Below are positions 960-15,627 of a DNA stretch of 15,628 nt, one piece after another. The DNA is from Octopus sinensis. Taxonomy: Eukaryota. Under the pieces are notes generated by a model, which was not told the DNA's origin, did not search any database, and saw only the letters and a program-made list of their open reading frames with translations. Made by a program: the position numbers and the translations under genes. The stretch's first letter is position 1; every line of letters begins with the position of its first letter. The DNA is taken from positions 1 through 15,628 of the forward strand of contig NW_021825429.1 of NCBI RefSeq assembly GCF_006345805.1, given 5' to 3'.

Positions 960-1861
960 TCTCCGAGTCTGGATTCTTTTCAAGAGATATTTTACTCCGA
1001 AGGGGGGTTCCGCAAGGATCCTGCCTCAGTCCACATCTCTTCAATTTGGTTATGAGCAGTTTCCCTTTGCCCCAAGACCCCCGGACAAATCTACTTCTCT
1101 ATGCAGATAACGTCCTTATTCTTGACACCTCAAAGGACGCGATGGCCTCAGAAAAGAGGCTTTTCACCTACATTGAGGTAATAAAAGAGTGGTGCGCCAG
1201 CAAGCAGCTCTCGTTAGGAATGGATAAATCCGCATACCTACAAATCAACTCGAAAAAGTCATCAGATCAGATCTCTAGCCGAAATTGTCCGCCCCAGCTG
1301 CATACGCTAACTCGGGTGCATGTCAAGAAAAAGAGAGCGAAAGCCATTGAAGAAGAAGCAAGCATGCATCTGGATACTAAGACTTTCCTCTTCGTATTCC
1401 ACGCAACCATCCTACCCAGCTTGCTGAACGGAATGGAAGCATGGTACTACTCGAAAGATCTCGAGAAAATTTACAGGCAATGAGAAAAAATTCGACGCTA
1501 CGTGCTGAAGCTAGCTTACAGGCTTGACCCACGAGGCCCCGTCCCAAGCTGGGCGGAGTCCAGATCCCCAGAGATACGACTGGTCATTGAGAATTCTATC
1601 CGGTCTTTCCGGAGAAGATCTCAAGTGACCGACCTGTTCATCGATCGGAACAAGTGACCCCCCCAGATTTCCTCAAACAGCAATATTGCTGGATAAGTAA
1701 TTCCTGCTTTCTTAAATCTCTGCTTTCTTAACTCTGGCTCACGACAGATGAATTGGACGCACGCTCAGAAGAGTTCAGTTGCCTTGACTTCAGTCTCGTG
1801 CTATCATTGTCCTTAATTCCTGTCACTTACTCTGTTAATTACAATAAAATTGATTGATTGA
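960..1861 (+). mobile_element. 5'-truncated APE-type non-LTR retrotransposon (LINE A): RT C-terminal half, 3' UTR and tail; inactivated
   Basis: GVPQGSCLSPHLFN at 1004-1045 is in frame with LLLYADNVLIL (YADD degenerated to YADN). The thumb region TFLFVFHATILPSLLNGMEAWY follows, with an in-frame TGA at 1481-1483. AATAAA at 1843-1848 is followed by a (TTGA)3 tail. Clade and 5' end are uncertain. Confidence 0.85.
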
Positions 1862-2082: not shown

Positions 2083-3787
2083 CAGTCCGACCTCTAATTG
2101 GGGCGCACCTCCAGGGGTGGGGCACCTCTTTTTTGGGGAAAACTCTGTTTTGGGGCATTATAAATTTTTTTAACCAAATTATAAAAAATCAATTAATTTT
2201 AACATCTCTATTTGGGGCATTGATTTTTTATTAAATAAAATTAATTATACCAATTTAAAAAATAAATATTTTAAGACACGTTTCATTTCAAATTTCTTGT
2301 GTAATGCCTTTGAATTATTATTATTATTATTATTATTTAAAGACCAAACACGGGCAAAGCCAGTTAATTATAGTTATTCCCGTGATCGCCGATCCAAACG
2401 AGGGAGATCCTTCTGAAAGGTTCAATCCTTCCCGCAAGATCGGCCTGAGACGACGATGTCCCAGGGTCTGAGAAGCTAAGAGTCCTTTTTCGGTAGGCAT
2501 TAAGTGCCTCCTGAGCGTTGCCATATCCGGAGGAATGAAACCAAGTTGAAGATTGCTGATCATCTTTTAAAGAAAGAACATTCTGAGAGGAGATTATCCA
2601 TAATGTACAATACTAGCAAGGGAACTATTTTTCGTATAAAAAAGAATATTCTTCCATTTATCAAAAAAGGATTTCTTTTCCTCATCATTAAGTGAAAATA
2701 AAAACGGATTTGATGAAAAAGTCCTTGATATTTTTCAGCGTCTAAGGGATCAGAATGTTCCAGTTTCTGGAACTCTTTTAAAAAAAATTTCCCTAACTGT
2801 TTCTTTGAGAATGGGCTTAAACAAGTTTAAAGCTTCAAATGGATGGTTAGAAAAATTCAAGCAAAGGCATGAATTAAAATTCCGAACATTGTCAGGCGAA
2901 TTCGCATCTGCTGATCATGCGATAATTCTGAATTTTTTATCAGATTAAATATCAAAGTTGAACAATATGGAAAGGAGAACATTTTTAATTGTGACGAAAC
3001 TTCTCTTTTTATCGAATTTTATGCTCTTCGTCCAAAAATGCGTGGATGACAAGAGACATTTTTATATCCTGGCTCAAAAAACTAATGAAAAAATGATTAT
3101 TCAAAAAAGAAAAATCTTAATGTTATTAGATAACGCTGCTTGCCACAAAATATCGACATTAGCAACGTGATTTTTTATTTTTTCTAAAAAATACGACACT
3201 AATACTTCAACCATTGGATGCTGGAATCATTAAAAATTTCAAGGATAATTATTTGAATTGTCTAATTGATTTTTTATGTTTTCAAGACGACCAGGATTTG
3301 TTTATAGAGTCTTTATCCAAATTAAATTTGCGGCAAGTGGTAACAATAATCTCAGATGCTTGGAATAATGTATCTGCGGATATTATTTATAACTGCTGGC
3401 AAAAGGTTTTTCGACAATCTCCATCAGACTCGAGTTGCATAAATGAATCATCTGAAGAAATATTTAATAATGTTATTGATGAATGTTTTGATGAAATAGA
3501 AGATAATGATCCAAATATCTAACTATCAATATCACAAATTTTAAGTTTGATGGAAAACTTAGAGACAAACATCTTTGATTTGATTCCAGATTCTCTTCAT
3601 GATTTTTATGAATTCAGAAAGAAAGTGTCGTTAGGAATTAAAAATAAATATAAATATGGAGAAAAATTAACTGATTATTTTAAAAAATAATGTTCTTTTT
3701 CTTTATTTATTGAGCTTTTTGAAAAACCTCTTTTTTGGGGAAACCTCTGATTTGAGGCACTTAGTGCCCCATTTAGAGGTCGGACTG
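2083..3787 (+). mobile_element. pogo/Tigger-family DNA transposon, both TIRs present, degenerate transposase
   Basis: TIR cagtccgacctctaattggggc (2083-2104) matches the inverse at 3766-3787 (1 mismatch), with TA on both sides (2081-82, 3788-89). Transposase relics: HTH (ETKLKIAD..MYNTSKGTIFRIKK), CENP-B-type FKASNGWLEKFKQRH, catalytic IFNCDETSLF / LLDNAACH / LQPLDAGIIKNFK, and C-terminal KLTDYFKK* (stop 3688-3690). Frameshifts, stops and an internal deletion are present. Confidence 0.92.
2316..2536 (-). mobile_element. 221-bp retroposed insertion (5'-truncated LINE/SINE-like, (TAA)n tail) nested in the pogo transposase start
   Basis: The segment is GC-richer than its surroundings, with a (TTA)n run at 2315-2338 that reads as a (TAA)n 3' tail on the minus strand. 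GAAT is duplicated at 2312-2315 and 2533-2536. Removing the segment restores ATG CCT TTG AAT GAA ACC AAG TTG AAG ATT (MPLNETKLKI). Confidence 0.75.
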
Positions 3788-4826: not shown

Positions 4827-5590
4827 GAGAAGAAGAATATGGTTTATTTAATACAATAGCTCCAAAAGAAAAGTGGCCGAGGAATTAGAGCTTAGGGGGC
4901 TTGATAACGAGAGCCACGAAGGTCTCAACCTCGGTTTTGCCCCAGGAGACTGTCTTATCTCCCTCTGCGAATTCGAGTTTTTGCCAGGATCGCGTTTATC
5001 GTGTCAACACTCCGCTCATGCAGGTCCTCCAGCGGACTGCTGAGCTCCAGGCCGAATGCCAGTTTGATGGCAAATCGTCTGGTTTTTTCGAGTTTGGCGA
5101 TTAGAAGGTCCCTTTCATCAGTTTGGTACCAGCCCTCCGAACCATAGATTATTAGTGGCTGAACACAAGTCTGGTAGATGTGTAGAAACGTTTCTGCGCT
5201 TAGACAAAAACACCTCAGTCCTTTTAGGATTTTCGCTCCTTGTTTCCGCTTTGCATGCACATGGGGTTGTATGACCCGGTGGGGTCTATAGTTACTCCCA
5301 GGTAACGTAGGTTCTTCGATATAATCAGGTTCCCATAATCCTCGAAAGTCGGTTTTTTGTCACGACCCATTGAAATCCAACAAATGGTACTTTTGTCCCG
5401 AGCGAGATTCAAGCCTTTACCATTGCACCAGATTTCAAGTTCCTCCAAGTACGGTTCTAGTCTGCTCCAGGACAACCTTCTTCTGTGTCGGGGTCCCCAC
5501 ATCGAGACATCCGTAACCAAGATATCGTCCGCGTAGATAATTAGTCTGCTCGTAGGAAAATGTGGTTTCGGGACGTCGGCCAGAAATATA
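4827..5590 (-). mobile_element. 5'-truncated APE-type non-LTR retrotransposon (LINE B) with candidate 11-bp TSD
   Basis: RLIIYADDILV, WCNGKGLNLARDKS, LRYLGVTID, then (frameshift) IYQTCVQPLIIYGSEGWY..LEKTRRFAIKLAFGL. AATAAA lies at 4848-4843, followed by a (TTC)n-like tail. Identical ttaatttttta flanks both ends (4816-4826 and 5591-5601). Confidence 0.88.
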
Positions 5591-5682: not shown

Positions 5683-6495
5683 ATGAATAAGCCTGGTCAG
5701 CTTTAACTACTTTTAATAATTATCTAGATGTCACCGTAGCCATAGCACATGAAACCTACAAAAAAAAGAAAGTAAAATTAAATAGTATATTTTAGAAAAG
5801 TGAAATCGAAATTGATGATAACTGTTTCTTTTATATAAAAAACTACGATCAAAAGGATAGCGAAACAAAAGTGGAATCCGGTTCTAAATGTGGTTCGATA
5901 AAGACCTCATTTAGTATGCATTTTAATTAGTTCCTGTTAATTAATCCCATGAATAATAATTACCATAACTCATTTTAGTACAGGAAAATTGTTCTTTGAT
6001 TGATTTACCACTTCATTCTGCTTGTCGACGAAAGGAAATAGATTTTGTGCTGGAATCTATAAAACACGGAGTTTTTTGATCTTTTCAATATTTGAGGTCT
6101 CCTGTAACACAGTGGATAGTGCAGGAAATATTCTTCTTCACTTGGCTGCGGATATTGACGACGAAGAATTAATAAAAAAGATTCTTTCAGTTACAGAAAA
6201 CGTGAATTCCACAGTATTTTCAGTTTAATTATATTTAGAATAAATTGGGAATGACCGCATTGCATCGAGCTGCAATTAAAGGATATGCAAATATTGTAGA
6301 TTTGTTGTTAAAAAATGGTATTATTTTAACATAAATTGAATAGGAGTCGATCCAACAATTTTAGATAAAAATAACATGCAGGCTTTAGATCATTCAACTA
6401 ATAATCAAGTTTCGGCAATTTTGAAATTATCAGTTTATGGAATTAGTGAAAACATTAAAAATTATTTGGGGAGCTCTGAGGAAGAGGCAGAGTAG
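5683..6495 (+). CDS. OSTF1: Osteoclast-stimulating factor 1-like protein (degenerate SH3 plus ankyrin repeats), 204 aa, 7 exons
   Basis: Exons 5683-5695, 5728-5771, 5796-5913, 5979-6070, 6097-6213, 6239-6317 and 6344-6495 join into a stop-free 615-nt frame. All introns are GT-AG (32, 24, 65, 26, 25, 26 nt). The segments IDLPLHSACRR..VDSAGNILLHLA..NKLGMTALHRAAIKGYANIVDLLLKNG align by eye to OSTF1 ([43 protein letters not shown]). Length and the acidic tail also fit. The three 5' exons are less certain than the ankyrin exons. Confidence 0.8.
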
Positions 6496-6508
6496 ACTAA
6501 TCTTTTGC

Positions 6509-6514
6509 AATAAA
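6509..6514 (+). promoter_or_regulatory. Putative polyadenylation signal of the OSTF1-like gene
   Basis: AATAAA lies 13 nt after the TAG stop. The motif is common in AT-rich DNA. Confidence 0.5.
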
Positions 6515-6656
6515 ATTGGATTTTATTTTTAAATGATTCTTAAAAGAATAAATTTACTTTTTAAACGAAATAATAATTCTTAGTTAGATTATTAAAAAAT
6601 ACTGTTTGAATAATCTTTGTGACAGGAACTTTATTAAATAAACTATAGCTAATTAC

Positions 6657-6878
6657 TGGAGACACACAAAGAAACTTAGCTCCTTATTAGGAGACAGTAA
6701 AGATATCATACGGAGAAAAACCATGTTAAACGCAGCATTACACAGACTGAAGAACCTATGGTTAAAACTGAAACAAAAATAACATAAAACAGAGAATAAT
6801 GATATAGGACACATCGAACCAATTTTTCTATACAACTCTGGGACCTGGGGCACTTCAAAAAAGGAATTGGAGAGGCTG
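6657..6878 (+). mobile_element. RTE-like non-LTR RT thumb fragment (not in ORF track)
   Basis: WRHTKKLSSLLGDSKDIIRRKTMLNAALHRLKNLW..*..IEPIFLYNSGTWGTSKKELERL resembles the post-RT region of RTE-type elements. It contains one in-frame stop. Confidence 0.7.
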
Positions 6879-7190
6879 GTGATTTTTAGCGTTTCTGCCA
6901 GGTTAGTTGCGGAGCCCGCCTCTGTGGCTGACGTAAAGATGCTTCCGGCGGAGAAGGTGTCTGTGCAAGTTGCGTTCCAGATGAGCGACTTGCCATTTTC
7001 GAAGGGGAAAATCGTTAGGCTGTCAGGACGATTACCATCCTCCTGAATCAGGCCGACCGGTTCCAACTGTGATGGGAATCGGGCAGTTTCAAGAGTCCGC
7101 TTGACTATGTTGTTGAGGGCAGCGTGTCGGGGAAGCGTCCGGAGCTTCTCTGACACGATAATAAGTGCAATCCAAAGGGGTTTACCTCAA
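6879..7190 (-). mobile_element. CRE-like non-LTR retrotransposon C-terminal (RLE) fragment
   Basis: VNPFGLHLLSCQRSSGR/PRHAALNNIVKRTL..PSQLEPVGL..DGNRPDSLTIFP..GKSLIWNATCTDT..AGSATNLAETLK matches the CRE-clade knuckle and RPD..WD endonuclease pattern, with the catalytic D changed to N. Confidence 0.85.
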
Positions 7191-7629
7191 TTATTTAATA
7201 AATTGTTAATTATTCAGCGGCCGGATAGAATGGTGACTCGAATTTATCCAACCGCAACGAAGGGTTTGTTCCATAATCTTTTTTTAACTCGAAACTATGT
7301 ATAATTTTTTATCTAAACTTTATCTCCAACACTAAATTTATATTTACTATTGTGGACATTGATTTTCCTATTTATTGCCTTATAGTAGACTGAGTTTACA
7401 TCAATCGGATTTAAATTAAGTTTGAATTTTTTGGACTTGGACAATTAGAATCGCATAAATATAAATTCAAAGTTAAAATACTTGAATTTTCTAAATTTGA
7501 ACATATCAGGCCGACCGATTCCAACTTAAAACATAATTTTCAAAATGATTTTTAATATTTTCTTAAAACATAATTTGATAATTATAACCTGCATCAACTG
7601 TGTTTATTCCGCTTATTTTTTGATATCTT

Positions 7630-7800
7630 TCGAAAGGACTCTGATTTGAAAATGAATGTACAGCCTTGTTATAACGGTACACTGCTTTTTTGAGAATTTC
7701 CAGCCACTTTTTTTCATCTGTGTCTTTCATTTTGGAGAGTTTTCGGGTGATGGTTTGATTAAAACGTTTGACAATCTCCTTTGTAGGCATCTTGTTGACA
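7630..7800 (-). mobile_element. Retroviral-type (rve) integrase C-terminal core fragment
   Basis: EIVKRFNQTITRKLSKM..KKWLEILKKAVYRYNKAVHSFSNQSPFE corresponds to the VERFN..W...YN...H....SPFE motif. Confidence 0.8.
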
Positions 7801-7858
7801 ATAAGGCAGCACTCTGAGACGAAATAATATTTATAATAAAAATAATCCTTTATTGATC

Positions 7859-7989
7859 CCATTTAGTTTGTATTAAATTCACTTGATTTACTGTTAGTCC
7901 CACTTAGTTTTCTGCTAGACCCACTAGTTTGTTGTTGATTCCACTTGATTTTCTGTTGATTCCAATTAATTTGGTTCATCCTATTTAGT
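7859..7989. repeat. Degenerate ~21-bp minisatellite (about 6 units), consensus near ccacttgattttctgttgatt
   Basis: Units start at 7859, 7879, 7900, 7921, 7941 and 7962, with lengths of 19-21 nt. Confidence 0.75.
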
Positions 7990-8134
7990 ATGGGGAATAA
8001 TATAGAAAAATCAAAGAAATAAAGAATCTCAAAATTCATAAATCAGGCGGCATTAACGATACAGGCTCATAAAAAATTAGCAATAAATTTCATTTTGAAA
8101 ACAAAAAAATATATTTTCTAAAATTACGTTAATA

Positions 8135-8632
8135 ATAAAACATTTACGTGGAGAGGCCTTGTGCTCCTCGGATACAAGGCAAGTCGAAAGGTCGATTTAT
8201 TCATTTAATCAAAGCATAAAACGCCTGATATTGTCGGCAAGTTCTCGAAATTGTTTTGGACAATCTTGCGCATGCATAAAAGACATGTTTATAATTACAA
8301 CAATACTATTCATTCTACGACAAAAAATCCGATTTTACATATTTATGAATGTTGGAAATCTTTGAAAAATTAATGAAGAAGAAATTGAGAAACTTTTAGC
8401 CTTTGATTCTAGGGAATTATTAGAGGCACAAGAAAGTGCATTAGAAAATTTAATTATTGTTAGCAAAAAAATGATTGAAAAAAATTGAGATACGACGAAG
8501 AAAATATCAAGGTTGGAACGACTATACTTTAAAGTTGCAAACAAAAAAAAGGCTTTACTTCTAAGAAGTCAATTTGGAAAAGGAAGCGAAGAAACAATAA
8601 TTGCATTGGATTCTCTTCGAATGTCTAAATAA
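8135..8632 (+). mobile_element. Second rve integrase relic with C-terminal extension, heavily frameshifted
   Basis: Joining frames gives IKHLRG/RPCAPRIQG/..FNQSIKRLI and VYNYNNTIHSTTKNP. An acidic/basic tail (NEEEIEKLL..) follows, with in-frame TGA stops. Ends are approximate. Confidence 0.7.
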
Positions 8633-9305
8633 TCCCAAAGTCGATACCTGAATCCTTCCATTTTAGTTAAATTAAATTTTTTTTATCAAAAGATAACTTT
8701 ATTTCTTGTCAATTTCTAGTTTTTAATACAAAAAATTCACCAAGTTTCCAGATTTTGGAGCCTAGCCAAAGACGTAGAGATTAGTCGTTTTTATGAGTTT
8801 TTGATTGTCACTTATGATTTCAGACTTGTCTATGTACTTAATTAAACAGTCAATAAAATACTTGTTGAGGAAGCAACTTATGTTATTACCACGGAGGAAA
8901 TCAAATAAAATCTTGGAATTCGTTAGCAGATCATGCCTTAATCTCTAAAAAAACTTCTGGAAAGAAAATTATTTTGTATTTTGGATCTCCTGGAAGAAGC
9001 GTATCCCAAAATCACTATTTGGATGTTTAGGAAAGTAGAAAAGAAATGAGAACCATTTCGGTCGACAATTCTAAAACTAAACCTTAGAAAAAGTGCAATC
9101 TGAACATTTTAAACACTATATTTATTAGACTAGCAGAATGTTAAAAATTAAGATTTCTGTAGAAATGCATATTGGGAGGGTACTGGAATGTCTGATCAGG
9201 AGTTTAAAAATGCCTTGAGGGAGAAACAGCATTGGATTTATTGCTTCCTCGACATACTTTCTGGGTAATATTCGTTTCGATAATGCCCATAATGTTGATC
9301 ATCTG

Positions 9306-10220
9306 TCACAAATGACGAAAAAAAATTATTTCCAGATCTGTTATTCTGGAAGATTTGTGGCCTTTGATTAAACTGATGTTTGAAGACCCCAAATTCTGTG
9401 TTACTGGAGGTGGATTGGAAGGTAGGAGGCTAGAGTTGCTCGGGTTGTTTCTCCGTTCCTTGGACCTCCTGTTTTGAAACCAGACCTAACACTAGAGACC
9501 CCCATCCTGACTTGGATCACGCGAATTGGTAGTCCAGTCAATTTGGTCATTTCTTCCAATGTATGACGCGATGGCTTTCTTTCACTTTCGTACAATTCTG
9601 TAAGAAGCCCAATTTGGTGTGGTTTGATTGATGTCCTCCGTCCACGTTGTTTGCATTTTTTGAGGTTATTGTTGGCTTCATGGTTGGTTTGAACTTCCTC
9701 ACTAATGGATTCAGGCTTTTCAGGACTCCCATTCGCTTCCGAACAAGATTTAGGAGACTTTGATTTTCTTTTCGATTCCGCAGTGTTTTCAGTTTTTACT
9801 AAAAATAGCTCAATTACCAAACATATATTTTTGTGATAATAGTCCATGCAGTAAAGTGTGGATTTATCAGCATAGGAAAAGAAGTCCCCAGTTTTGAGTT
9901 CTTTATTACAACACCGACACTTGAGGCATTCAACATGATACATATGTGACTTGATGGTATACACCAATGTATTTAGTTCAATTTGGACCTTACACAACGG
10001 ACAAAACTTAAAATTCCTACAAACTAAGTTTTTATATAAACATTGTATAGTCGTTAAAACAGTAAATCTCGTCCCTCACGTAACAAAGATCTGTGAGTAC
10101 TTGAGAACACACAGAACACTGAAGACAGTTAGTGTGATAAAATGAGTCCATAAGACGCAAATGTGGGTTTTTTGTATAAATTACTTCTTTACATTTGGTA
10201 CATTTCAGTTGACCTTCCAT
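9306..10220 (-). CDS. Lhx1/5: LIM-homeodomain transcription factor, Lhx1/5 (Lim1/lin-11) class, 279 aa, 4 exons
   Basis: Exons 10220-10042, 10016-9823, 9798-9512 and 9485-9306; GT-AG introns of 25, 24 and 26 nt. It has two LIM domains (CTKC..H..C..C..C..C..D and CPLC..H..C..C..C..C). The homeodomain [34 protein letters not shown] matches the Lhx1/5 pattern [34 protein letters not shown]. The middle intron is stop-free and a multiple of 3, so it is inferred. The C-terminal stop (TGA 9308-9306) is moderately certain. Confidence 0.9.
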
Positions 10221-10929: not shown

Positions 10930-11421
10930 AATTATGCCATACAAATATCATTTTTCGAATGATACTCCTTAAATATACTTTAAGTCAGATTAATTAATTG
11001 CACTTTCCATATAAAGCAGATTTAAAAAAATGTATGTAACTGTCAGTTTTGACCCAAAGAAAATTTGCCATCTTAGTTCTTATTCTTTCTAATGCAACCA
11101 GTGAGAGTGTTATCCGAAGCGTCGATACTAGGCTAATAGGTCTTAAGTTGGGTATGGTTTCTCTTTTTTTCCGGGTTTCTTTAGTGGAATTAACCATCCT
11201 TTGCCGAGGTCTAATAGGCTATTCTGCTCAAATTCTTTGTTCAGGATGTTTGCAATTGTTCTAGCAAGCTTAATTGGCGCGTACTTTATTAGTTCAGGTA
11301 GGATATTATCTAGTCCCCCGAACCTGACAGATAAATTAGGCCACACAAATATCATTTTTAGGATGATACTCCTTAAAAATAAATTGAATTAAATCAATTA
11401 TTCGCACTTCCAATATAAAGC
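10930..11421. repeat. Pair of 88-bp imperfect direct repeats (10930-11017 and 11334-11421)
   Basis: Ungapped hand alignment gives about 72/88 identity. The core acaaatatcattttt(c/a)g(a/g)atgatactccttaaa differs at only 2 of 33 positions. Confidence 0.85.
11045..11330 (-). mobile_element. RTE-like non-LTR RT N-terminal fragment
   Basis: GLDNILPELIKY..LGKGWLIPLKKPGK, then (frameshift) NLRPISLVSTLRITLS..RIRTKM, corresponding to RT domains 0-2. Confidence 0.8.
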
Positions 11422-11423
11422 CT

Positions 11424-11564
11424 CCGATGACCATATTGCACGCAACCTTGCGTCCAATGTCAATTTTTGGTACTTGGACGATGTTACCTTTGGAGGACAT
11501 TAACAAAATCACGTCTGGTTTCGCGGAGATCGGTCTATCTTTAAATGGTCGTAAGTGCGAACTC
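11424..11564 (+). mobile_element. CRE-like RT catalytic fragment (not in ORF track)
   Basis: IARNLASNVNFWYLDDVTFGG, then (frameshift) GFAEIGLSLNGRKCEL. WYLDD and GL.LN..KCE are typical of CRE-clade RTs. Confidence 0.75.
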
Positions 11565-11726
11565 GTACAGAGATTGGTTTAATCATCTCGAGGAGGAGTC
11601 ACGACAGTCGTGAAACGAGCTGGCTTTTTCAGCGGATATCGTTCGCGATATTACGTGGGAATTGCCTGTCCATCCGTTCGGCGACTCATCTAAATTAGTT
11701 AACTTCTCTTCTCTATTTTTCTTTAC

Positions 11727-12893
11727 GTGAATAATTCATGGCTTAAAAAAAATTTATATTCATTGCAAATTGACGAATCAACTGACGTAGCAGGAATTGC
11801 ACAGTTACTTATTTATATTCGTACTGAAAAGTCAGAAACTATTATTGAACAATTTCTTTTCTGCAAAACATTAGTTACTACTACTTGTGCAATTGATATG
11901 TACAATTTGATATTTGATTATTTTAATAAACATAATATGTCGCGAGCGCAGCGAGCGACCGAGCGCAGCGAGCGACCACTCAATTTCTAGATCCGATCAA
12001 TCAACAAATCTATAAATTGACAAATACCCAGGCTGGTATTTGGGTTAAATATATTCGATAACAAAATTTAAAATCGATGCCAAAGCAGAATGAGCTTTAA
12101 AACCGATTTCATAAATAAAAATAATATTTTAAAATTTATAATGGATATTTTAGAATAATGAGAAAAAATCTAAATGCTTCATAATTTATTAAAATGTCAA
12201 AACAAGAATCTTCTGAAGGAGCAAGCCTGTCTGCACAGTTCATTTTTGATTAGAAGACCTAATTTTAGAGATTAAAACGAAAAAATAGCAATGAGATCTG
12301 TTAAATTATTACCCCCCTCACAACCTAAACCAAATTAGCGTTCAGTATTCATTGATTTTACTTTTTCTATTAAGGTCTACTTATAAATTATTTTATGGGA
12401 TTCAATGGAAAACTTAAGTTATTTCAATTTTAATTTTAAATCATGTTAAAATTTTAAATAATTTAATAAATATATTTGTTGATGACAGGCTTGTTAGCTG
12501 TCAAAGTCGCGTCTAGCGCTCGGTCGCGCGCTGCGCTCGCGACATAATATTTCCTTTAAAAATTGTGTTGGTGTATGCACAGATGGGGCACCATCTATGT
12601 CTGGAAGACTTAATGGACTTGTATATTGTTTTATTATATGATTAATTCAGGTTTCTTTACTATTTGTGTGAAAAGGGATTTTCTGCATTACAAAACATTA
12701 AAACAAATAAGCGAAAAAATCTACTGGATTTAGATTCAGAAATGCGACTGGCCTTATCAAATATTGAGCCAGACATAGAAAAATTATGTAAAAATAATAA
12801 ATTTTATAATTATGTTTTGATTTTTGATTATGTGCCGCGAGATTATTTTTTATTAGCATTTGCGCCGCGAGAAATTTCTCGTGAAAACCTATG
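11727..12893 (+). mobile_element. hAT (Buster/Charlie, ZBED5/8-like) transposase relic, internally deleted and interrupted by a MITE
   Basis: YSLQIDESTDVAGIAQLLIYIR..EQFLFCKTL..FDYFNKHN rejoins across the MITE to ISFKNCVGVCTDGAPSMSGRLNGL. It then jumps to the C-terminal YLCEKGFSAL.NIKTNKR..LDSEMRLALSNIEPDIEKL. Subterminal tg(t/c)gccgcgaga occurs twice (12831, 12861). The right end near ctatg 12893 is tentative; no left TIR was seen. Confidence 0.88.
11938..12544. mobile_element. 607-bp non-autonomous TIR element (MITE) with TGT..ACA ends and 5-bp TSD
   Basis: 29-bp TIRs tgtcgcgagcgcagcg(a/c)gcgaccgagcgc (11938-11966 and 12516-12544, 1 mismatch). TAATA is duplicated (11933-37, 12545-49). Excision restores the hAT reading frame. 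The interior is AT-rich with no recognisable protein. Confidence 0.92.
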
Positions 12894-12987
12894 ATGTAAA
12901 TAATCCCGATATTTTTTTCCCATAAAAATAAATAGAATAATGACAAATAGTTATTAACTATGCATATTCAATTATCCCGATATTAAG

Positions 12988-13356
12988 TTGAAATTAACGG
13001 AGATCATATGCAATTATTCACAAATAATAGATATTCTCAAAGTTTCGGAATGTTGCGACTATTCAATCAATCGGGAATATTATGACATAGAAGGACTACA
13101 TTTTTATGATGATAAGGCAAATATTAAAAATTATATGAATAAAAGAATGGAGGAAAACGGATTTAAACCTATTATTGAGATGACTGAACCGAAAATTAGC
13201 CAACGAGATTATTTTTTACTTTCACGCTGTCAGGCATCCTCTGCATCCGTTGAAAGAGCTATTAAAATGCTGAAAAATATTTTAAAAAAGATAGAAACTT
13301 CTATCCAGACAATATCAAGCATTACTTCTTATTATATTACAATAAATAAAATTTAA
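12988..13356 (+). mobile_element. Second hAT-like transposase C-terminal relic (distinct family)
   Basis: LLSRCQASSASVERAIKMLKNILKK and the frameshifted KDRNFYPDNIKHY resemble the S.SVERSFS.L..LL.KDRNF hAT dimerisation-type C-terminus. Confidence 0.65.
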
Positions 13357-14279: not shown

Positions 14280-15627
14280 TGTCACAGGCTGGATAATGGC
14301 CTGGGTTGGATAATACCCCCTTAAAAATTTTATTAAAGTCAAACAAAAATAACCTGATAATTAATTAAAAATAACTTGATAATGGAATTAAGTCGATTTA
14401 TTCAATTTTTTATCAGTTTTTTGATTGAATGAATTTTTCCAAGAGTCGGCAAAAACCGGCATCACAAATTTTTCCGAATCAATAACGTATTTTATTATAA
14501 TTATACAATCTTTTAGGTCTACAATTTATAAACAAATATTAAAAATTGATGAATTTTTATTATATAAAAATTTTCTATAAGAGTCATATTTTTTTATGCG
14601 ACTTTTGTGTAGATGTTTGGATGATTTGTCATTCAGATCTTTAAGTGCGCACGTGTCTTTATGAACTTCCGATATTTCATATATAGTTGAATCGATCTGA
14701 TCGTATAGGGGGTATTTTCGATTATTTGGATTTGTATCAATATCATGTCTCAGTAGGACATTATCTCCTACGGCTAAATCTTCATCAAATTTCCATTTCC
14801 GCCTCCTTTTCATTTTTTCTCCGGGAAGAACATGGCTTTCATGTTCTGTTGATTCAAACAATCGTCCTCGTTTTCGAAATAATCGGATCCAATTATCTCT
14901 GATTGACTTTATTCAACCGCTTCATTTCCATCGAATGACAATAACGCCGATCTTATTTCTTCCGGGATTAACTTATTTCCTCGCATAAAAATTTCGAAAG
15001 GTGTCCTCTTGGTCGTTCCATGCTTCGCCATGTTATATTTATTTATAAACGATGCTTCGCCGGCTTAGTCGCCATCAACTTTTTTGAATAGTTCAATACA
15101 TATGCACCTGATAGTGAACGCATTTTGAGATCACAGCAGTAATTTCGTCTCGGGTTACTGCATAAATTTCCTTTCTCAATATCGAAAGCAATTTATCTCT
15201 CCCAAAATGTGTCCTCATATGTTCGATCTATAATAATTATTAGTTTAAGTTCCTTTTCTTCTTTGGGAAACCTTCCTCTTCGAAAATTAACTGTTCTGTT
15301 AATTTTCTGTATCTTTTTTTCAAATTTCTGAAATCGGTCAATATAAAAAAACATCTATTTGAATATTTTTGATTACTTCAAGTTCATCTTCGGTAAGGTT
15401 GAGTAAAACCATTTCTGAAATATAAATTTGATCGATTATACTTATTATTTTTCCAATTTGGAAAACTTAGATAACCAAAATAAATTTGCACGCTAGATTA
15501 ATTTGAAAAAAAACTTTGATAAATTACTAAAATAATTAAGAAAATCAAAAAATCTAATCAAAATTAATTTGAAAAAATAACGTTGAGGGGGCATTATCCA
15601 ACCCAGGGCATTATCCAGCCTGTGACA
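14280..15627 (-). mobile_element. Ginger/TDD-like integrase-type DNA transposon, deletion derivative with intact TIRs
   Basis: 40-bp TIRs tgtcacaggctggataatg(g/c)cctgggttggataat(a/g)ccccc at 14280-14319 and 15588-15627 (2 mismatches). The minus-strand relic starts at ATG 15412: zinc-finger-like HMRTHFGRDKLL..ISKCVHY, then FINKYNMAKHGTTKRTPFEIF and a C-terminal LAVGDNVLLR..IYEISEV. The DDE core is missing. No RT or LTR is present. The right TSD lies outside the window. Confidence 0.82.

Follow-up and report, generated by a model that had tools for sequence, protein, structure and literature searches.

Ultra-short introns of the dicyemid type in a contig filed as Octopus sinensis, and the signals at their acceptors

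The introns of dicyemid parasites are ultra-short, with published lengths of 26.2 +/- 1.9 nucleotides (nt), a median of 27 nt and a mean of 38 bp, and they have been described in a series of papers (Aruga 2007, PMC2222250; Ogino 2010; Lu 2019, PMC6736024; Zverkov 2019, PMC6543705; Hadjez 2026, PMC13644364). Among 51 metazoan genomes, dicyemids hold the only comparably short intron set outside the myxozoans, and the splice-site logos of Dicyema japonicum are reduced to GTa at the donor and AG at the acceptor, with A residues that are conserved upstream of the AG (Hadjez 2026, PMC13644364). Here, we analyze nine introns of this kind in an OSTF1-like gene and a LIM-homeobox (Lhx) gene on the 15,628-bp contig VCDQ01009219.1 of the Octopus sinensis assembly GCA_006345805.1; this contig, in its entire length, is referred to as the window. 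An original prediction, made from the sequence, was of a minimal spliceosome in which distance from the donor, and not branch-site or U2AF signals, selects the acceptor, namely the first AG past about 20 nt. What the prediction describes is correct but already known, and it stands in a contig that is probably mislabelled; the proposed mechanism is mostly explained away.

Introns of similar size are found in several other lineages, with a median of 22-27 nt in myxobolid myxozoans and lengths of 20-35 nt in Paramecium, 15-16 nt in Stentor and 18-21 nt in the Bigelowiella nucleomorph. These lineages share with the introns described here a narrow length distribution at a hard lower limit, a reduced splice-site consensus and weakly conserved A residues before the AG, but their origins are independent and their minimum lengths distinct. 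Where the machinery has been examined, the equally short-introned myxozoans retain the U2 small nuclear RNA (snRNA) and U2AF1/2 (Hadjez 2026, PMC13644364), and short-intron ciliates conserve SMU1 and RBM17, factors that act on short introns. The usual acceptor is the first AG located 3' of the branch site (PMC11482624). Our literature search found no report of a dicyemid spliceosome inventory, no report of GC donors in dicyemid introns, and no explicit wording of a "first AG past about 20 nt" rule for these introns. In C. elegans, the 3' splice site is a UUUUCAG that is read by U2AF with no branch consensus, and the introns are at least ~40 nt long.

Intron boundaries, lengths and the first-AG rule

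Both window gene models were re-derived from the sequence, and the nine intron lengths were recovered identically to the original prediction, together with its donor pentamers and the exact ends of its internal AGs (Table 1). Because nine introns are too few to test a rule, a 97.7-kb sister contig (VCDQ01013172.1, L001) was mined for more. It carries a diverged copy of the Lhx locus at 86-88% identity and, beside it, a complete gene for transaldolase as well as RPSA and BET-bromodomain genes, which contribute 17 introns (eight, three and six, respectively) to an enlarged set of 26. Another contig, VCDQ01009379.1 (L002), is a copy of the entire window, 99.4% identical to it, with 98 differences, including 33 gap openings, that are concentrated at window 10-16 kb. 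Since none of them falls within the OSTF1-like or LIM-homeobox gene, L002 gives no independent introns. It has the appearance of a haplotig or of a duplicate left uncollapsed.

The boundaries were established by reading frame and homology. Removal of the introns leaves open frames collinear with homologues, and the junctions are gap-free in transaldolase, RPSA, OSTF1 and the homeodomain; gaps of 1-2 amino acids (aa) adjoin the junction between LIM1 and LIM2 in the Lhx protein and two junctions in the BET protein. In the window, retention truncates the protein for eight of the nine introns, which upholds the original prediction that they are real except for the 24-nt Lhx intron 2, which is not proven by frame because it is in frame and without a stop (its retention gives a 287-aa open reading frame, ORF). 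It is nevertheless a probable intron, on the basis of its GT...AG ends, its size and its ATTTTTAG 3' end, and its length is kept in the L001 copy. The original prediction concedes that some circularity is possible, its boundaries having been drawn from frame and homology; the transaldolase and RPSA junctions are independently fixed by gap-free alignment.

The 26 introns measure 24 nt (six), 25 nt (five), 26 nt (six), 27 nt (two), 28 nt (two), 29 nt (three), 32 nt and 65 nt, so that 24 of them lie between 24 and 29 nt and none is shorter, which supports a hard minimum intron length of about 24 nt. All end in AG, with GT donors in 23 and GC donors in three. This length class matches the published dicyemid values, as the original prediction had held. 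Further likenesses to dicyemid introns are the weak donor, GT followed by A or T, and positions that keep the alignment with homologues collinear, in the homeobox as elsewhere. The differences are the three GC donors and the fact that the genes are filed as octopus, with National Center for Biotechnology Information (NCBI) models that cross the introns.

The acceptor is the first AG that ends more than 20 nt from the donor in nine of nine window introns and in 26 of 26 overall, with no late AG anywhere, and "first AG beyond about 20 nt" is therefore a correct description. Sixteen AGs are skipped, ending at positions 5, 5, 5, 6, 10, 12, 14, 14, 14, 16, 17, 18, 18, 19, 20 and 20. As originally predicted, each of the six window AGs that end at 10-20 creates a premature stop when used as acceptor, and the 32- and 65-nt window introns lack an AG from position 21 to their ends. 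Several AGs near the donor are passed over despite a good acceptor context (TTTTCAG at 10, GATTTTAG at 12 and TCTCTAG at 20), and GT-AG options of 13 nt in transaldolase and 15 nt in RPSA are left unused where GC-AG introns of 25 and 24 nt, respectively, give gap-free alignments.

The rule itself leaves little room for violation. When intron interiors were permuted at fixed composition, a late AG was absent from 13% of the shuffles of the nine window introns (P = 0.13), from 8.6% for the 17 L001 introns (P = 0.086) and from 1.1% for all 26 (P = 0.011). Introns of 24-26 nt can accommodate a late AG at only two to four positions, and in introns of up to 27 nt every such position lies within the last seven bases, in an A-poor tract. 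By our own count, about 44 of the 147 free positions are upstream of -7, and 37 of these belong to the 65-nt intron, the only one longer than 32 nt, which is AG-free from 21 to 63; at an AG rate of 3.6% per position, the probability of an AG-free run upstream of -7 is estimated at about 0.26, and that of the AG-free run in the 65-nt intron by chance at about 0.2-0.3. Because the free positions are few and mostly confined to the A-poor tract or to a single intron, the rule bears almost no independent evidence of measuring from the donor.

Signals at the acceptor and the choice of the 3' splice site

The original prediction saw no shared branch-point or polypyrimidine consensus, a view that the 26 introns contradict. 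T stands at -3 in 21 introns and at -6 in 21 (each p = 4e-4 against an interior T content of 46.5%), and positions -7 to -3 are 67% T and 15% A, a pyrimidine tract shrunk to ~5 nt. An A is present at -9 in 13 of the 26 (p = 0.016), with no strong consensus, and somewhere within -9 to -7 in 24 of the 26, against ~17 expected from the interior A content (hand count; hand binomial ~0.002). Many introns, the 65-nt one included, finish in A-TTTT(T)-AG. Relative entropy anchored at the acceptor exceeds that of the shuffles (z = +3.3), whereas that anchored at the donor (positions 3-22) does not (z = -0.7). Of the conditions that the original prediction had set for its own refutation, a motif that keeps its distance to the acceptor is found for the T tract and TAG and, suggestively, for the A.

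The exons of the five genes provide a second measure of what distance can do. They contain 204 GTs, 99 of which would yield pseudo-introns of up to 32 nt under the distance rule. T occupies -3 in eight of these 99 decoys and in 19 of the 23 real GT-donor introns, the count of T in -7 to -3 is 1.33 in decoys and 3.35 in real introns, and the A+T content is 55% and 72%, respectively. Distance by itself is therefore insufficient to choose acceptors. The predicted threshold stands as far as the 24-nt minimum and the skipping of early AGs are concerned, but not as a choice of acceptor made by distance instead of branch or U2AF signals, and a spliceosome that ignores such signals is not supported in a sample whose long introns number one.

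The arrangement resembles the classical first-AG choice (PMC11482624) in that the stretch between the putative branch A (-9 to -7) and the acceptor is AG-free and in that AGs which coincide with this A or lie upstream of it are passed over, four of them containing the A itself. In these four introns (AGTTTGTAG, AGTGTGTAG, AGTGTTAG and AGTCCTAG), the skipped AG at -8/-9 provides the last A before the acceptor, which fits a branch adenosine at that place followed by use of the next AG, as in the textbook rule. The spacings differ, with 7-9 nt from putative branch to AG and ~16-20 nt from donor to branch, and those of yeast and mammals are far larger. As in C. elegans, a short U-rich tract that abuts the AG is the main 3' signal, but it takes the form TTTT(T)AG, with T and not C at -3, and a role of U2AF in reading it is presumptive here.

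In our judgement, these are probably ordinary U2-type dicyemid introns at their minimum length, in which a 3' signal and the first AG after an adenosine determine the acceptor. The 3' end would be read by sequence, as an A located 7-9 nt upstream, a 4-6-nt A-poor and T-rich tract, and then (T)AG. The A at -9 to -7 is the likely branch point, situated 16-20 nt from the donor in the common size class, and the tract would probably be bound by U2AF-like factors or by factors of the SPF45/RBM17 and SMU1 types that act on short introns. Exon ligation would take place at the first AG downstream of the branch adenosine. AGs that end 20 nt or less from the donor may be unusable because they leave too little RNA to span the 5' splice site, the branch site and the acceptor. 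The "first AG past ~20 nt" would then be a consequence of the minimum length, of a 3' tract free of AG and of the classical choice of the first AG.

Several points weigh against this reading. All 26 introns of the sample are drawn from just five genes and two contigs, the L001 copies of the three Lhx introns are not independent, and all junctions were placed by frame and homology. The enrichment of A is modest and, in introns of 24-26 nt, it fits equally well a donor-anchored branch at 16-19. Two transaldolase introns (TAL_5 and TAL_6) lack an A at -9 to -7 and, on reading of the sequence, carry an A at donor position 17. Conserved A residues are also reported to be more distant from the AG where introns are longer, in D. 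japonicum as well (Hadjez 2026, PMC13644364).

The last two of these points speak for a hybrid arrangement, in which spliceosome geometry fixes the branch ~16-19 nt from the donor, and the acceptor is the first AG to follow the branch by ~5 nt or more. The ruler would then exist but would place the branch instead of the acceptor. An A is found at donor position 17 in 12 of the 26 introns, including both that lack one at -9 to -7, and in the 65-nt intron an A stands at position 16 (hand count). Donor-anchored information, however, does not rise above shuffles, and of the nine introns that reach at least 27 nt, four lack an A at 16-18 while seven carry one at -9 to -7 (hand count). The 32- and 65-nt introns, moreover, share the A-T-tract-AG end of the short ones, an end for which a branch located 40 nt upstream would have no use. 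We regard the hybrid as unlikely, although the sample cannot decide whether the donor or the acceptor anchors the branch. A physical ruler in dicyemids that runs from the 5' splice site, with the branch fixed at ~17 nt or not specified by sequence and with use of the first AG past a zone of steric exclusion, appears improbable. If it were true, introns of 30-100 nt would be AG-free from position 21 on, and the T-rich 3' tract would serve only to avoid AG and would hold no protein-binding signal.

Somewhat more doubtful still is the mechanism originally proposed, a reduced spliceosome that gauges distance starting at the donor and joins the exon at the earliest AG past ~20-23 nt, without recognition of branch or U2AF-type signals. 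It accounts for the adherence of all 26 introns, for the absence of skipped AGs beyond 20 (P = 0.011 in the shuffles of 26), for the bypassing of AGs in good context at 10, 12 and 20, and for the AG-free run of the 65-nt intron, and it is in keeping with the D. japonicum logos that are reduced to GTa and AG (Hadjez 2026, PMC13644364). Against it stand the clear T(-3)/T(-6)/A-poor signal anchored at the acceptor, where a donor-anchored signal is absent, and the 99 exonic pseudo-introns that it would excise. The supporting AG counts also lose force, as the free positions of introns of up to 27 nt all lie in the A-poor tract (P = 0.13 for the window nine) and the ~44 of 147 upstream of -7 come largely from one intron (37; P(no AG) about 0.26). 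The weakest explanation, that chance and ascertainment suffice because the shortest frame-restoring GT...AG leaves little room for a second late AG, can draw on P = 0.13 and P = 0.086 for the window and L001 introns taken separately, on the conceded circularity of the boundaries and on the 24-nt Lhx intron unproven by frame, but it is very improbable in view of the combined P = 0.011, the independently fixed transaldolase and RPSA junctions, the sharp lower edge at 24 nt and the bypassed early AGs and 13- and 15-nt options.

Genes of the window and of the sister contig

The coordinates of the two window genes and their introns are collected in Table 1. Both gene identities proposed in the original prediction hold at the level of OSTF1-like and LIM-homeobox, but the subfamily of the latter may be either Lhx1/5 or Lmx.

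Table 1. Features of the OSTF1-like and LIM-homeobox genes in the window; AG positions are counted from the first base of the intron.
Feature	Position	Strand	Length	Donor...3' end	Internal AG ends at	Remarks
OSTF1-like gene	5683-6495	+	204 aa			Diverged SH3 and ankyrin repeats; 7 exons; spliced ORF open
OSTF1-like exons	5683-5695, 5728-5771, 5796-5913, 5979-6070, 6097-6213, 6239-6317, 6344-6495	+				
OSTF1-like intron 1	5696-5727	+	32 nt	GTCAG...TCTAG	5	
OSTF1-like intron 2	5772-5795	+	24 nt	GTAAA...ATTTTAG	14	
OSTF1-like intron 3	5914-5978	+	65 nt	GTATG...ATTTTAG	17	AG-free 21-63
OSTF1-like intron 4	6071-6096	+	26 nt	GTTTT...ATTTGAG	none	
OSTF1-like intron 5	6214-6238	+	25 nt	GTATT...ATTTAG	10	AG context TTTTCAG
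OSTF1-like intron 6	6318-6343	+	26 nt	GTATT...GAATAG	none	
LIM-homeobox gene	10220-9306	-	279 aa			As modelled; two LIM domains and homeodomain
Lhx intron 1	10041-10017	-	25 nt	GTTTA...AGTTTGTAG	18 (= -8)	
Lhx intron 2	9822-9799	-	24 nt	GTTTG...ATTTTTAG	14	Probable intron
Lhx intron 3	9511-9486	-	26 nt	GTCAG...TCTCTAGTGTTAG	5, 20	Within homeobox
Candidate fourth Lhx intron	9373-9404	-	32 nt	GTAAC...CATCAG		Speculative

The OSTF1-like model is collinear with the structure of human OSTF1 (3ehq), its residues 6-184 being aligned with 14-192. In the N-terminal part (aa 6-96 against 14-103 of 3ehq), there is a single 1-aa gap, away from the junctions, and the alignment is gap-free at the junctions of introns 2, 3 and 4 (aa 19, 58 and 89). 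Pfam recognizes the ankyrin repeats, and a search of 5.8 billion proteins with the OSTF1-like protein returned two weak ankyrin matches and no orthologue or close homologue. Exon 1 codes for MNKP plus one base only, while human OSTF1 presumably starts with MSKP. The boundaries of intron 1 are the least secure of the six because the Protein Data Bank (PDB) alignment does not cover it; its retention cuts the ORF to 7 aa. Intron 2 contains an in-frame stop, and splicing to its AG at 14 also gives a stop. In intron 3, the sole other GT donor before the in-frame stop leads to a stop (by eye), and the ATTTTAG 3' end of this 65-nt intron is that of the 24-nt introns.

In the LIM-homeobox protein, Pfam identifies two LIM domains and a complete homeodomain (57/57, aa 176-232) that spans the third junction. 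The LIM pair aligns with Lhx4 and Lhx3, and residues 178-232 align with residues 5-59 of the Lhx4 homeodomain. Excision of intron 3 restores the full homeodomain across an 11-residue segment, and use of its AG at 20 gives a stop. Intron 1 lies in the linker between LIM1 and LIM2, where the Lhx4 alignment has a 1-aa gap near the junction; the last A before its acceptor is the A(-9) of the skipped AG. In the L001 copy, the intron lengths of 25, 24 and 26 nt and the skipped AGs are conserved, with the same internal AG in intron 1.

After the homeobox, the C-terminal tail of the gene (window 9238-9410, - strand) has three 1-base deletions in the window and in L002 relative to L001, and the first of them gives rise to the GTAAC...CATCAG of the candidate fourth intron. 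Its removal returns the window tail, FNQRPQIFQNN...YYPESM, for ~45 codons to the frame that is uninterrupted in L001, so that a fourth Lhx intron may be entertained as a speculative reading of the sequence; the context at its 3' end departs from the usual one, lacking a T tract and having C at -3. The tail may represent either intronization following a frameshift or a frameshifted tail in decay.

On L001, the spliced transaldolase aligns with mouse and human transaldolase over 3-318 with two small gaps, none at a junction, and the spliced RPSA aligns with a solved homologue over 3-219 with zero gaps. The BET model matches BRD4 and BRD2 in bromodomain 1 only; a 2-aa length difference from these proteins adjoins its first junction (by eye), in a polybromo alignment a gap of 1 aa is found next to the third, and the third and fourth introns were placed by reading of motifs. 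Four alternative models were considered and rejected: the 13-nt GT-AG intron in transaldolase, which would insert 4 aa into a gap-free conserved segment; the 15-nt GT-AG intron in RPSA, which would insert 3 aa; in the BET gene, a GT-AG intron of 43 nt that would cost a conserved helix and pass over AGs at 32 and 36; and a non-canonical GT-AA model of the third BET intron.

The three GC-AG introns are all on L001, at 908-884 (transaldolase), 15291-15314 (RPSA) and 5715-5691 (BET). Those of transaldolase and RPSA are fixed by gap-free alignment with solved homologues, and that of BET was placed by reading of a conserved helix. All three donors are preceded by an exonic CAG, as few GT donors are. 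GC-AG introns usually make up ~1% in eukaryotes, and three in 26 is far above this share.

Two 24-nt introns, at window 9799-9822 and L001 364-341 (TAL_7), are in frame and stopless, such that retention adds 8 aa, and the other six introns with a length divisible by three all contain an in-frame stop (by eye). The tiny introns of Paramecium have a similar stop-codon pattern, which is linked to nonsense-mediated decay. A candidate 23-nt GT-AG intron (GTTTGGATTTCGGTTTTTTATAG) lies at L001 ~15717-15739, in the tail of RPSA, which is not conserved, and would, if genuine, lower the minimum intron length to 23 nt. At L001 ~5290, the otherwise recognizable ET domain of the BET gene is interrupted by a 1-base frameshift (NIDT / LDEHRLKLIEKQV), which reflects either an indel that arose at a run of CC during assembly or a true lesion.

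Origin of the contig and its significance

Metazoan genes with introns of 24-29 nt inside an octopus assembly point to a dicyemid, a kind of renal parasite of the octopus, as the origin of the window, and hence to parasite DNA that contaminates the assembly, on the grounds of gene content, intron size and host. The window genes (LIM-homeodomain and OSTF1) and those of L001 (BET and animal-type transaldolase) are metazoan, all with tiny introns, and D. japonicum was collected from O. sinensis. A ciliate or apicomplexan parasite of the octopus was rejected as the source, given the metazoan-specific genes and the use of TAA, TAG and TGA as stops.

Degraded transposon fragments flank both genes (window 1046-1483, 2958-3522, 4955-5520, 6653-7156, 11143-13356 and 14526-14861), some of them in G+C-richer patches. 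In the remaining window ORFs, Pfam found transposon remnants only, with a weak match to RVT_1 (reverse transcriptase) and a match to DDE_1 (pogo-type), and hAT-like and integrase-like pieces were also seen by eye. This debris agrees with the 49% repeat content reported for D. japonicum. The repeat- and transposon-rich surroundings are shared with Dicyemida, as is the host O. sinensis. A query of 27 concatenated transposon-derived ORFs from the three loci yielded 5043 candidates and no significant protein match, and an Rfam search of 56 kb of the three loci at the gathering threshold found no snRNA or other RNA.

The only genes called on these contigs are the "Lhx1-like [Octopus sinensis]" models P0003 and P0004, which read across 24- and 26-nt introns into the wrong frame; P0003 (180 aa) runs through Lhx introns 2 and 3. 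In a protein search, the LIM-homeobox gene retrieves P0003, the window's own ORF with the introns read through, and, at 69% identity, a "LIM/homeobox protein Lhx1-like [Octopus sinensis]"; the searches with the OSTF1-like and LIM-homeobox proteins brought back no spliced product of a dicyemid. The assembly has no gene call at all for OSTF1-like, transaldolase, RPSA or BET. Part of the Octopus sinensis assembly would thus be parasite DNA, in which the "octopus" protein models are read-through artefacts, and gene finders for such contigs need to admit introns down to ~24 nt, to accept GC donors and to make use of the T-tract/TAG signal.

Tiny introns have been published for dicyemids since 2007 and are therefore not new in themselves; what is new here is only their unannotated or mis-annotated presence in the octopus assembly. 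How the spliceosome handles introns of ~24 nt is the open question with which the 2026 paper closes (Hadjez 2026, PMC13644364). A donor-anchored ruler, if true, would be a real departure from 3' splice-site choice as defined by branch site and U2AF. On present evidence, the simpler reading suffices for these introns, in which a lower limit on length combines with a short U tract and with use of the first AG that follows an A.

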